From Orbicella franksi (taxonomy: Eukaryota), in the NCBI GenBank assembly GCA_964199315.1, contig OZ116705.1:30132001-30196000 (forward strand): a stretch of 64,000 nt of DNA, read 5' to 3'. The notes below the pieces were generated by a model. The model saw only the letters and a program-made list of their open reading frames with translations, ran no database searches and was not told the DNA's origin. The position numbers and the translations under genes were made by a program. This document shows positions 6,921 through 10,197 of this stretch, one piece after another. Position 1 is the first letter of the stretch; each line of letters opens with the position of its first letter.

Positions 6921-9900
6921 CGGCATTTACATGACGGCCTAGAGAGCTGTCATGATGGTTTAAAGTGTGACTTATTTCGGGGAATTTGGCTATCTGAACA
7001 GTTCATGTCTTAGAAAAAGTATTCTTTTAATGTTTTAGAGTTCCTCGAGGGATAAATTCACGCTTTTGTAGCCAAACTCAGTGACAGATGTTTCTGTTGG
7101 TTTCCTGCTGCCATGTTAGTGCCCATACGGATGGGCACCAGCATGGCGTCTCCATACAAATCTCTATAAATCTGGGTAAAATATTTCTCCGCATATTTTG
7201 CATAAGAAAAATTGCTGTGATCAGAATCTTGGCGAGAGCCTTTGCATATTTACCTTCTTTCAATTTCCAGATTCTGGACTTTATTTATTGAACGGTTTTA
7301 ATTTCAGTTGATCTATTTCAATGGCGTGACACTGAAAACCAGCAATATAAATCATCCAAAAGCAGAGAATGAGTTAGAGGTTGTGGAAAGTAAAAGAAAT
7401 CTATTTTTCAGGAAAAGATACTGTCTGTGCTTACCGTAACTGTTCGACGGACTGTCCTCAAGCTGTTTGCTCCTTTGGTGAAATGGTCAGACTAACGATA
7501 ACTCAACTTTTTTCCATATTTACTCCTTTAATCTTGTTTTAGACATGGACGAGTGCTCTTCAAACTCTCATAGCTGTGATGTGAATGCTGTTTGTAACAA
7601 TACTCGTGGGTCTTACACTTGCGCGTGTAAACTTGGATATTCAGGCGATGGCAAAAATTGCACTGGTAAGTTATTTTCACTTACAGGAACTATAAAGTCA
7701 TCAGTTGAAAACAACAACAACAACAACACTGCGAAATGAGTTCAGACGTACTATCATAAAGTAATACTTACATCAATACGAACAAAAACACCTTACTCAA
7801 GAACATATAGAGCACTTTTGGTGAACATGTACAACATAATTTATGTTTGTTTACTAACTTTGCCGTGTTCATTATTATCCAAGTCATCGATGAGTGCGTC
7901 AGCGGTGTACACGACTGCCACCGTTTAGCTTCATGTACAAACACCGTAGCATCCTACACATGTACGTGTAACCAACCTTACACGGGAGATGGGAAAACTT
8001 GCAGGTCATCTGCGCCAGGTGAGTATTTCATGTTAATTGTGCTTCAATTCAGGCTGAAGACGTTCCACCAAACATGATGTCTAAAAAGCAATCAAAAACC
8101 TCAGACTTCGTCAAACCCAACAAACTACTTTCTTTTGTAAAACTGTTTTCAAGAAAAGCAATACGCCAAACTAATTAGGGAACCAATCAGAATTCTCCTT
8201 TCCATCTTGGATCAGTTTGCCATATTGGAAGGACTTACTGCTGAAAATAAAAAAAGGACACGACTCAGTAATGTTGTTTGCTATCTCCTCGCTACTACGG
8301 CACGCTTTAACATTAACATTAACAACACTTAGAAAGGACAGGGGTGGGGTGTGGAGCTAAAAGAGCCCACGTGGACTTAAACAATTAAAAACACTTTTCA
8401 AAATTTCAATATTTACAAAAGCTGTCAAATTTCGTGACTTTATCTGCCGCTGGTTTTTCCATTGAGAATTCTGACGTCGGCGCGGAGCGTTCGTAATGAT
8501 ATTACGTTTTCCTGATAAATACTCTCCGAATATTTTCCTGTTCAGGATTTAAAATCATCTATTAAGAGTATTGATCACTGCGACCCAAAATTTAAAACGA
8601 GATATTCCAGGAAAAAAAAAAAATTAAGCTGCACGATGGAATATAACCACCACATATAAAATATCTTTCCGAACAAACAGTGCATCCAGTTTAGTTAGCG
8701 TCACATTTAGGGTCCAAGCAATGATGGTCATCTTATAACTGGTGAAGATGGCAGTGTTATTTATTCTTAGCAAAACCAACTTTCAACATAGTCCACCAAA
8801 ACAAGTGCTAAGTACAAAATTGATCCAAAGAACGTTCTTATATGTTATTTTTGCAGCGGGTCTTAAATATTCCAGAATTGTGGGAAACAGCCAGAATTTT
8901 TTGACATGGCTGGATAAATGGTTAAAGCCTGTGACTCGCCAATCCTCTTACTGGAATCGCTGTTACCAAGCAACTGTAAATGGCTGGTCTTCCTCTACCT
9001 TCCATTCAAACTGTGACGGCAAAGGTCCAACTGTCACAATAATCCGTGTTGGGAAATATATTTTTGGAGGATATACAAGTCTCTCGTGGAGTAAGTGACA
9101 TGATCAATTTCATCTTATCACAGACAACCCAAGCGCAAGCTGTGAGTCAGCCATGATTATATTTCGCAGTAGCGGTCACGGAGAAATATGGAAAAAGAGT
9201 TTTAAAAAGAATTAAAAAAAGAAATATTTACAATATGATGTGGGATAGTTAAGTGCTAGAGAAAATTCTTAACAAAATGCCTTATCTTACTTCCATGGTG
9301 TATTACTTGCTGTGTTTACGTGCCTCTTTTCTGATTCGTGACGGTTTTAGAGAGATATCGGGATGGAAGAACTTTATAGGAAGCGGTACAACCGCTTCGA
9401 ATCATTAAGCAACGAAACAAAAAAGGTTAATACCAAAGAAAGGCAAATAAGTCAATGATATTAAGAATTTTCTGGATAACTCAACGAGATAAACAGGCCG
9501 ATAGAAACAATTGCATTTTTTAAAAACGCCTTGGTGTTCCTGGCTAACTGACAGCTTTAAAGCTCGATATTAATTTTTATGAAATTTATAAAACAGGGCA
9601 TGAAAATTATGTTCAGTCTGAAATGGGGAGAGCTGTTTCCAGTCTCCCACCAGCCTTGCTTTTCCCAGATTTTAAGTTATTAAAAACTCAGGAGACATTT
9701 AACATAAAGGAGCCGAAGAACTTAAGATTAACACTGCAAGAAATAATGCCGAGCTACAAATAATAGTAAAATTTTGTGGGCCAATCAAATTAACGTTGTC
9801 GGCAATACGTCATTAATGTTGGACTTCTTTTTCCATTGTGTATTTCAAATTAGGTTACAGTTGTGTTGGATATCGCTACGATTCAGCAGCCTTTCTCTTT

Positions 9901-10197
9901 TCATTGGTTAACAAGCCTGGTTGGCAGCCACTAAAGCTAGACCAAACAGGAATCGCTAGTTCTTCCAAAGCACATTCCATCTACAGCTGCTCTTCCTTTG
10001 GACCAACATTTGGAGGAGGACACGGTATTTACATTGCCAACAACGCTGCATCAAACACCAATTCATACTCAAACCTTGGATGGACCTACAGCCCGCCAGC
10101 TGGTTACAGCTATGGATCCTCCTTCACACAATCTTTCCTGGCGGGTGGTTACAACTTCCGGCCTGACGAAGTCGAAGTCTTTTATGAAACTACCTGA
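660..10197 (+). CDS. Copy A: secreted H-type-lectin-like x6 / follistatin-Kazal / C-type lectin / cbEGF x3 / TLDc protein (5'-partial; exons 1-2 upstream of window)
   Basis: Exons 3-18, all with AG/GT boundaries, compatible phases and no stops: 660-824, 1399-1509, 2052-2177, 2536-2632, 2856-3074, 3208-3584, 3851-4018, 4235-4345, 4558-4674, 5134-5224, 5777-6151, 6364-6486, 7543-7665, 7884-8018, 8857-9090, 9854-10197 (TGA). Exon lengths match copies B and D, except that exon 18 is shorter in B. Bases 1-659 align with intron 2 of copy B. Confidence 0.9.
5325..5561. mobile_element. TTAA-flanked MITE (Kolobok-like termini) in intron 12 of copy A
   Basis: TTAA-AGGAGCTACGTCACAGT ... ACTGTGACTGTGCCCCT-TTAA imperfect terminal inverted repeats. 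The element is absent at the same site in copy B (26661, cgctg-ttaa-aaataagat) and in copy D. The superfamily call is inferred from the TTAA target plus AG..CT termini. Confidence 0.75.
6743..7344. mobile_element. 602-bp MITE with 2-bp AT target duplication in intron 14 of copy A
   Basis: TIRs TGCTGGTTTTCA / TGAAAACCAGCA, flanked by AT (6741-6742, 7345-7346). The empty site gggtaATataaat is present in copy B (~27775-27787) and copy D (~55015-55030, minus strand). Confidence 0.85.

Follow-up and report, generated by a model that had tools for sequence, protein, structure and literature searches.

Background

Corals have no adaptive immunity and yet discriminate symbionts, pathogens and neighbouring colonies; to our knowledge, the receptors behind this discrimination are largely unknown. 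The characterised proteins with a TLDc domain (OXR1/OXR2, NCOA7, TBC1D24/Skywalker and mEAK7) are cytosolic, conserved, single-copy regulators that bind the V-ATPase, and we know of no occurrence of the TLDc fold outside such conserved cytosolic V-ATPase regulators. Millectin is one of the germline-diversified recognition families of invertebrates. Snail FREPs, amphioxus VCBPs and bivalve C1qDC proteins are families of the same kind (PMC6835236), and tachylectin-2 is a diversified recognition family of corals (PMC2880987). Here we analyse 64,000 nucleotides of the genome of Orbicella franksi (GenBank assembly GCA_964199315.1, contig OZ116705.1, positions 30,132,001 to 30,196,000 of the forward strand; this whole stretch is called the window, and all coordinates refer to it), which holds four copies of a gene whose last exon, exon 18, codes for the C-terminal part of a TLDc domain and is hypervariable. 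An initial annotation, made from the sequence of the window, had proposed diversifying selection on this exon, with the TLDc rather than the lectin domains of the protein as its variable recognition end. The analyses below lend good support to diversifying selection at a defined set of exon-18 codons, while the recognition role of the TLDc is a putative function.

Hypervariable exon 18 in the window

Comparison of the window with itself showed four paralogues, A to D, arranged as an inverted pair of tandem pairs; copies C and D lie on the minus strand, a detail absent from the initial annotation. The features that bear on the last exon are given below, where omega is the ratio of nonsynonymous (dN) to synonymous (dS) substitution rates, M2a is a codon site model, and the 90 variants are the exon-18 cores of the next section.

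8857-9090, plus strand: exon 17 of copy A, the constant N-terminal half of the TLDc domain, which served as control exon (Pfam TLD match, splice sites)
9854-10197, plus strand: exon 18 of copy A, the last exon, coding for the C-terminal ~60% of the TLDc domain and the stop (acceptor AG, phase-1 start, TGA, PF07534, RNA joint 9090-9854); the gene of copy A ends at 10197
9877-9951, plus strand: invariant framework of copy A before the loop (column entropy ~0-0.9 across the 90 variants; many codons under significant purifying selection)
9952-9975, plus strand: hypervariable loop of copy A, IASSSKAH (7 of 8 columns with P(omega > 1) > 0.99)
9994-10155, plus strand: stretch of copy A with 17 scattered hypervariable codons among invariant framework (entropy, M2a posteriors > 0.95)
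9994, 9997, 10006, 10015, 10021, 10030, 10060, 10066, 10072, 10081, 10099, 10111, 10114, 10126, 10129, 10150 and 10153, plus strand: starts of these 17 codons
10156-10194, plus strand: invariant C-terminal strand of copy A, identical in A-D
30723-31045, plus strand: exon 18 of copy B, 323 nt, loop SH, with a deletion of 6 codons
37984-38324, minus strand: exon 18 of copy C, 341 nt, loop QYSYYRSH
51613-51956, minus strand: exon 18 of copy D, 344 nt, loop KYSYRRSY

In all four copies, exon 18 follows a conserved ...TTAG acceptor, starts with two bases completing a split codon and ends with TGA. RNA contigs join exon 17 to exon 18 (9090 to 9854) and span five further introns of copy A, and exon 18 is present in RNA runs labelled coral metagenome; the exon is therefore expressed and spliced. 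At least 7 of the external contigs are spliced cDNA, while none of the raw RNA reads of run X24 aligned to the window.

A check of coordinates and translations confirmed the exon lengths of the initial annotation (344/323/341/344 nt in A/B/C/D, all indels being multiples of 3) and the four loops that follow the invariant KLDQTG. Its hand counts of the differences between A and D were also reproduced: exon 18 differs at 18 of 112 aligned codons, with 2 further indel codons, versus 5 of 124 in the C-type lectin (CTL) exon, 3 of 125 in exon 8 and 5 of 77 in exon 17. The richness in Tyr, Ser, Arg, Gly and His that it had claimed holds at the variable positions of the 90 variants (Y 27.7%, S 12.1%, N 9.6%, H 8.7%, R 8.3%, G 6.9%).

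Rates were estimated per exon in copies A, B and D with the method of Nei and Gojobori (NG86) over exons 7-18, the 5′ module (exons 1-6) being set apart. Pooled exons 7-17 gave dN 0.023-0.032, dS 0.14-0.16 and omega 0.15-0.19, and exon 18 gave dN 0.10, dS 0.19-0.27 and omega 0.37-0.57; dN is thus 3-4 times that of the other exons and dS only 1.2-1.7 times. Taken individually, the lectin, Kazal and EGF exons have an omega of 0.04-0.58 and exon 17 one of 0.17-0.33, and at the exon-18 sites that are not variable in the external set omega among A-D is 0.24. This comparison, which the initial annotation had suggested as a check, therefore upholds the excess of amino acid change in exon 18, but with a whole-exon omega below 1 and a somewhat raised dS; the four window copies alone are insufficient to prove selection.

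The exon-18 family beyond the window

A phmmer scan with exon 18 returned 2052 proteins at E ≤ 0.001. In the 90%-clustered database, 481 short proteins matched at E ≤ 1e-20, the best of them 80-89% identical, and the matches include proteins of Oculina patagonica and Pocillopora damicornis that have the same framework and the same variable positions. Metagenome contigs of JGI and ENA were scanned with the invariant 20-mer CCTGACGAAGTCGAAGTCTT, which yielded 102 loci. From these loci and the window, 90 distinct exon-18 cores were obtained, each running from YDSAAFLF to the stop codon.

The entropy of the 90-core alignment is sharply bimodal. Framework columns are invariant or nearly so, and between 6 and 16 residue types occur in columns 27-35 (the loop), 43, 44, 47, 50, 52, 55, 57, 65, 67, 71, 74, 81, 87, 92, 100 and 101. 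About 24 of 95 codons plus the loop are hypervariable. The loop has 2, 4, 7, 8 or 9 residues and occurs in 80 distinct forms among the 90 sequences, and the short segment that separates the acceptor from YDSAAF likewise varies in sequence and length. The invariance of the C-terminal strand in the external set is partly a matter of ascertainment, because this strand supplied the 20-nt search pattern. The pattern of variability is far beyond chance: variation recurs at the same positions in 86 independent sequences, and in the external set omega is 1.77 for sites variable among A-D, versus 0.54 for sites invariant among A-D. With four copies in 64 kb and at least 90 exon-18 variants in coral metagenomes and metatranscriptomes, this is a large germline multigene family. 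The constancy of the lectins is read from the window copies, L080 being the only external locus that reaches the CTL exon.

Some members of the family have an in-frame stop or a frame break (L077 in exon 17, L024 upstream of the exon-18 core), and the family therefore includes pseudogenes. Several relatives (P0002, P0051, P0079 and others) have 2-7 tandem TLDc domains per protein, as in a protein of 1833 aa with 7 matched stretches, which indicates that the apparently extracellular TLDc module has been multiplied within proteins too.

Selection on exon-18 codons

Changes per site were counted by parsimony on a FastTree tree of the family. Framework sites gave dN 1.1, dS 4.55 and omega 0.24, and hypervariable sites gave dN 14.3, dS 8.5 and omega 1.7, or 2.0 with the loop excluded. 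Codon site models were then fitted with our own implementation of GY94 (F3x4, fixed topology, FastTree branch lengths with one scaling factor). For the 90 cores, omega is 1.23 under M0, and M2a (log-likelihood −7735.1) was preferred over M1a (−7939.5) with a likelihood-ratio test (LRT) statistic of 409, 27% of the sites having an omega of 3.6 and 24 sites a posterior > 0.95. The comparison of M8 with M7 across paralogues, proposed in the initial annotation, gave the same picture (LRT 419; 28% of the sites at omega 3.45).

Exon 17 served as a control in 33 loci where both exons are linked. Its M0 omega is 0.35 with an LRT of 6.7, as compared with an omega of 1.27 and an LRT of 151 for exon 18 in the same loci, and its omega across these loci lies at 0.29-0.35. 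Tree-free pairwise estimates gave dS 0.152 and dN 0.044 for exon 17, and dS 0.119 and dN 0.132 for the exon-18 core. In a split-sample cross-validation, where one half of the sequences served to choose the variable sites and the other half to estimate their rates, omega was 1.8-2.2, and ~4 when the dS of the framework was taken as the denominator.

At the variable codons, changes fall on codon positions in the order 1 > 2 > 3 (430/305/215), the framework showing the reverse order, and the change rates per base are nearly equal (A 7.8, C 7.5, G 8.2, T 6.9), i.e., there is no base bias. Both observations argue against a mutational hot spot and a base-specific mutator. The diversifying selection put forward by the initial annotation is thus well supported for a defined subset of exon-18 codons, by the family rather than by the window copies alone. 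Its second proposal, that the TLDc and not the lectins varies, holds for the half of the domain encoded by exon 18, the lectin, Kazal and EGF exons having the low pooled omega reported above; the half encoded by exon 17 is conserved.

Mosaic history of the exon

Different parts of the four copies have different histories. In intron 17, A and B diverge by 4-10%, C and D by 1-11%, and the two pairs from each other by 20-35%; in exon 18, the divergence is 11-18% both between A and B and between C and D, and in the 3′ untranslated region (UTR) copies B and C differ by 1% (10210-10307, 99% identical).

9994-10280 and the homologous parts of B, C and D, no strand assigned: tract of different history, in which informative sites join A with D and B with C, while on both flanks (intron 17 and downstream) they join A with B and C with D

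The inverted arms have thus exchanged sequence over most of exon 18 and into the 3′ UTR. This exchange explains part of the raised exon-18 dS in the window, and it means that the four copies are not to be treated as a simple tree.

In the 90-core family, r2 between sites is 0.01-0.05 (about 0.02), which is close to linkage equilibrium within 340 bp. A PHI-like test of distance-dependent incompatibility, for which only 32 biallelic sites were available, did not reach significance (469 of 500 permutations gave a value no higher than the observed one). The proportion of nonsynonymous differences between variants (pN) is nearly flat at 0.10-0.15 for pairs whose proportion of synonymous differences (pS) runs from 0.02 to 0.19; because this binning selects on pS it is biased, and it serves here as a description only. 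The variable positions behave as though they were combinatorially reassorted, and the raised local dS, the flat pN and the near absence of linkage together indicate that conversion-mediated reshuffling or recurrent substitution is pervasive.

Contigs from other colonies (runs X1, X2 and X15) match copy A up to the loop border at 9952 or from 9999 onwards and are D-like or B/C-like in the rest; they are genuine mosaics that switch at the borders of the patches, or else chimeras introduced by the assembler.

Sequence and fold of the TLDc domain

Exon 18 of A-D matches Pfam PF07534 with 26.4-33.9 bits (gathering cut-off 24.5) and exon 17 with 48.7 bits, the two matches spanning positions 10-76 (exon 17) and 80-167 (exon 18) of the 170-position profile. 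An AlphaFold2 model was built from an alignment of 70 sequences for the homologue P0156, the product of a spliced transcript with 85% identity to copy A, and has a mean predicted local distance difference test (pLDDT) of 94.3 and a predicted template modelling score (pTM) of 0.91. The top 15 Foldseek matches of the model are all TLDc chains (E 1e-8, template modelling score 0.6-0.83), among them NCOA7-AS (7OBP), zebrafish OXR2 (4ACJ), Skywalker (6R82) and mEAK7 on the V-ATPase (7U4T); for NCOA7 and OXR2 the score is 0.7-0.8. Sequence alignment to solved chains (mEAK7, Skywalker) covers only the exon-17 half and the first strand of exon 18. By its sequence and its predicted fold the domain is a bona fide TLDc, and DSSP assigns the 24 selected sites of the model to coil (16), short helices (4) and strands of 2-3 residues (4).

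Gene structure and other features

The remaining features of the gene copies are the following.

~17.8 kb to 31045, plus strand: copy B (self-comparison)
37984 to ~41.3 kb, minus strand: copy C, with an internal deletion (self-comparison)
51613 to ~61 kb, minus strand: copy D (self-comparison)
2856-8018, plus strand: constant body of copy A, exons 7-16 (Pfam, RNA joints, phase-consistent splice chain)
2856-3074, plus strand: Kazal exon of copy A (Pfam)
3208-3584, plus strand: exon 8 of copy A, 125 codons, no domain name assigned
3851-4018, 4235-4345, 4558-4674 and 5134-5224, plus strand: four H-lectin-like exons of copy A (Pfam)
5777-6151, plus strand: CTL exon of copy A (Pfam)
6364-6486, 7543-7665 and 7884-8018, plus strand: three EGF-CA exons of copy A (Pfam)

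The exons of copy A were defined from RNA joints, conserved splice sites and reading phase, because the homologue search had returned only proteins sharing the TLDc: full-length homologues were sought in a representative protein search, in which the matches share the TLDc alone and have different N-termini. Judging by its domain composition, the multi-domain protein (H-lectin-like, Kazal, C-type lectin, three EGF-CA and a terminal TLDc) is evidently extracellular. Haplotig mis-assembly of the inverted arms was ruled out, as the non-coding DNA of the arms differs by 10-35%.

The H-lectin exon of copy B that corresponds to 4558-4674 of copy A is followed by a donor reading GAG and then AT in place of GT (22375-22390), and an insertion of ~3.6 kb (22387-26002), which has no counterpart in A and D, begins exactly at this altered donor; together, the two suggest that copy B may be mis-spliced or decaying. 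Segment 6701-7300 of copy A, located in the intron between the first two EGF exons, reaches a contig word depth of 2e5-6e5 in a DNA run and 2e3-2e4 in RNA runs, and is a very high-copy repeat or transposon. A second repeated unit lies upstream of B, C and D (11949-17435, 42351-48114 and 61985-64000; 78-87% identity among copies) and contains an open reading frame 28-30% identical to exon 8 (15819-16190, 45093-45470 and 63248-63619). This unit probably represents either 5′ exons belonging to these genes or a related gene next to them.

Interpretation and alternative explanations

We consider it likely that these genes form a germline family of TLDc-tipped proteins with selected sites in exon 18, reshuffled by conversion and contributing to a binding surface. 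Exon 18 encodes the C-terminal ~110 residues of the TLDc that ends an evidently extracellular H-lectin-like/Kazal/C-type lectin/EGF-CA protein; about 24 codons and a loop of 2-9 residues are under diversifying selection (omega ~2-4), interleaved with a framework under strong purifying selection, and outside this exon the gene is conserved, the exon-17 half of the TLDc too. Short gene-conversion or recombination tracts further reshuffle the variants among paralogues. On this reading, the variable residues would form a ligand-binding surface carried by a constant lectin/EGF stalk, and each paralogue would have its own specificity, possibly for microbes, symbionts or allogeneic non-self. With regard to the Kazal, C-type lectin and EGF-CA context, the role of the domain is probably different from the V-ATPase function of the characterised TLDc members.

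Several points weigh against this explanation. In the window, the whole-exon omega of exon 18 rises only to 0.74 when copy C is included (range 0.37-0.74), and the externally defined variable sites have a pooled omega among A-D of 1.23 (0.58-2.26), a value that rests on few synonymous sites. The external set is a mixture of paralogues, alleles and species ascertained by a 20-nt pattern, and the site models come from our own code instead of codeml or HyPhy. Four gametes occur at 34% of the site pairs of the 90-core family, and recombination inflates the likelihood-ratio tests of site models; for this reason, four segments were refitted, each with its own tree, and all were significant (LRT 30-119, omega 2.6-4.2). 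The dS of hypervariable codons is ~2-fold higher than that of the framework, and mutation, conversion or an artefact of counting in multiple-hit codons could account for some of the excess. No signal peptide is evident at 244-620 of copy A, whose true exon 1 probably lies upstream of the window.

It is also conceivable, if unlikely, that selection is real and the function is another one, the protein being a secreted effector in an arms race (a venom, an anti-predator, competitor- or prey-directed protein, or a carrier of a Kazal protease inhibitor) or a matrix or adhesion protein with paralogue-specific partners. The Kazal inhibitor domain and the EGF-CA modules would suit such roles, the EGF-TLDc architectures of cnidarians are uncharacterised, and the recognition role is itself putative; multiple lectin domains and variable positions rich in Tyr, Ser, Arg and His are, by analogy only, more typical of recognition proteins than of toxins.

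Quite unlikely, in our view, is relaxed constraint combined with mosaic history, where the variable positions would be unconstrained surface loops (omega ~1) and the divergence would stem from an older or different genealogy that exon 18 acquired by conversion. The low whole-exon omega and raised dS of the window, the contrast of A-D/B-C groupings in the exon with A-B/C-D groupings in its flanks, the very low linkage disequilibrium and the locally elevated dS in the variable codons are all in line with it. However, M2a and M8 outperform M1a and M7 by an LRT above 400 with an omega of ~3.5, the signal is kept when each segment has its own tree, and the cross-validated omega exceeds 1 against the inflated local dS as well as against the framework dS. 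Moreover, in the 33 linked loci the dS of exon 18 is not above that of exon 17 while dN is 3-fold higher, and changes are more frequent at the first two codon positions than at the third.

It is very unlikely that the variation is generated, in the germline or somatically, by targeted mutagenesis or templated patch conversion, with a minor part for selection: the doubled synonymous rate at hypervariable codons, a pN that is the same whatever the pS of the pair, the near linkage equilibrium and the switch of other-colony contigs from A-like to D- or B-like exactly at 9952 and 9999 would agree with it, but no base-specific signature was found, the variable codons change least at their third positions, omega stays above 1 when it is calculated with the local dS, the window variants are all germline-encoded in intact paralogues, and assembler chimeras could account for the switching contigs. 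Mutagenesis of the kind caused by diversity-generating retroelements or deaminases was rejected, as there is no base bias.

Returning to the selected, conversion-reshuffled germline family, a receptor role would give the TLDc fold an entirely different, extracellular role. An expressed family with a constant lectin/EGF body and a diversified TLDc tip is a concrete candidate for the receptors of corals, and with the ~24 defined positions and a high-confidence model in hand, binding experiments and surveys of populations can be designed directly. More speculatively, and with a rather low probability, the family may constitute a coral-wide combinatorial repertoire, in which conversion tracts, aided by the invariant framework blocks, would reassort the ~24 specificity positions and the loop into colony-individual specificities for symbiont or pathogen discrimination or for allorecognition. 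If this were true, the TLDc would be a new variable-receptor scaffold beside Ig, LRR, fibrinogen and C1q.

Comparison with known systems

Relative to OXR, NCOA7, TBC1D24 and mEAK7, the coral domain belongs to the same Pfam family and is predicted to share the fold, but it ends an apparently extracellular lectin/Kazal/EGF protein, occurs in at least 90 variants and has a hypervariable C-terminal half whose sequence can no longer be aligned with the solved TLDc chains. The same C-terminal order of EGF-CA followed by TLDc is seen in cnidarian EGF-TLDc proteins, which form a cluster in the ESM Atlas (TLD 98%, EGF 94%, EGF_CA 89%, Cnidaria commonest) with automatic annotation only and without a described function or variability. 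In the full-text literature, we found no paper that links TLDc to corals or cnidarians, to lectins or to diversifying selection.

The loop had been called CDR-like in the initial annotation, after the complementarity-determining regions of antibodies. The coral exon resembles antibodies and variable lymphocyte receptors (VLRs) in having a loop of variable length and scattered positions rich in Tyr, Ser, Arg, Asn and His within an invariant framework. Unlike in those receptors, the fold is neither Ig nor LRR and the variation is germline-encoded across paralogues; we saw no sign of somatic assembly or hypermutation in the window, where the germline paralogues are intact, or at the variable codons, which have no mutational signature. 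With neither an Ig-V fold nor somatic diversification, the term CDR-like holds as an analogy only.

Parallels are also offered by the FREPs, VCBPs, C1qDC proteins, tachylectin-2 and millectin, which are tandem-expanded secreted proteins with a conserved scaffold, a few positively selected positions and gene conversion among paralogues; the coral family is alike in its expansion, scaffold, selected positions and conversion, and its proteins are predicted to be extracellular. As in the FREP, VCBP and C1qDC families, we found a large tandem germline family with positive selection confined to sites of one domain (according to our own codon models, applied to recombining sequences). The difference from FREPs, VCBPs, C1qDC proteins and tachylectin-2 lies in the variable scaffold, which here is TLDc and not fibrinogen, Ig-V, C1q, tachylectin or CTL, the lectin domains of the coral TLDc multi-lectins being the constant part. 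By analogy, these genes would represent a diversified recognition family of a known type, built on a new scaffold, the TLDc.

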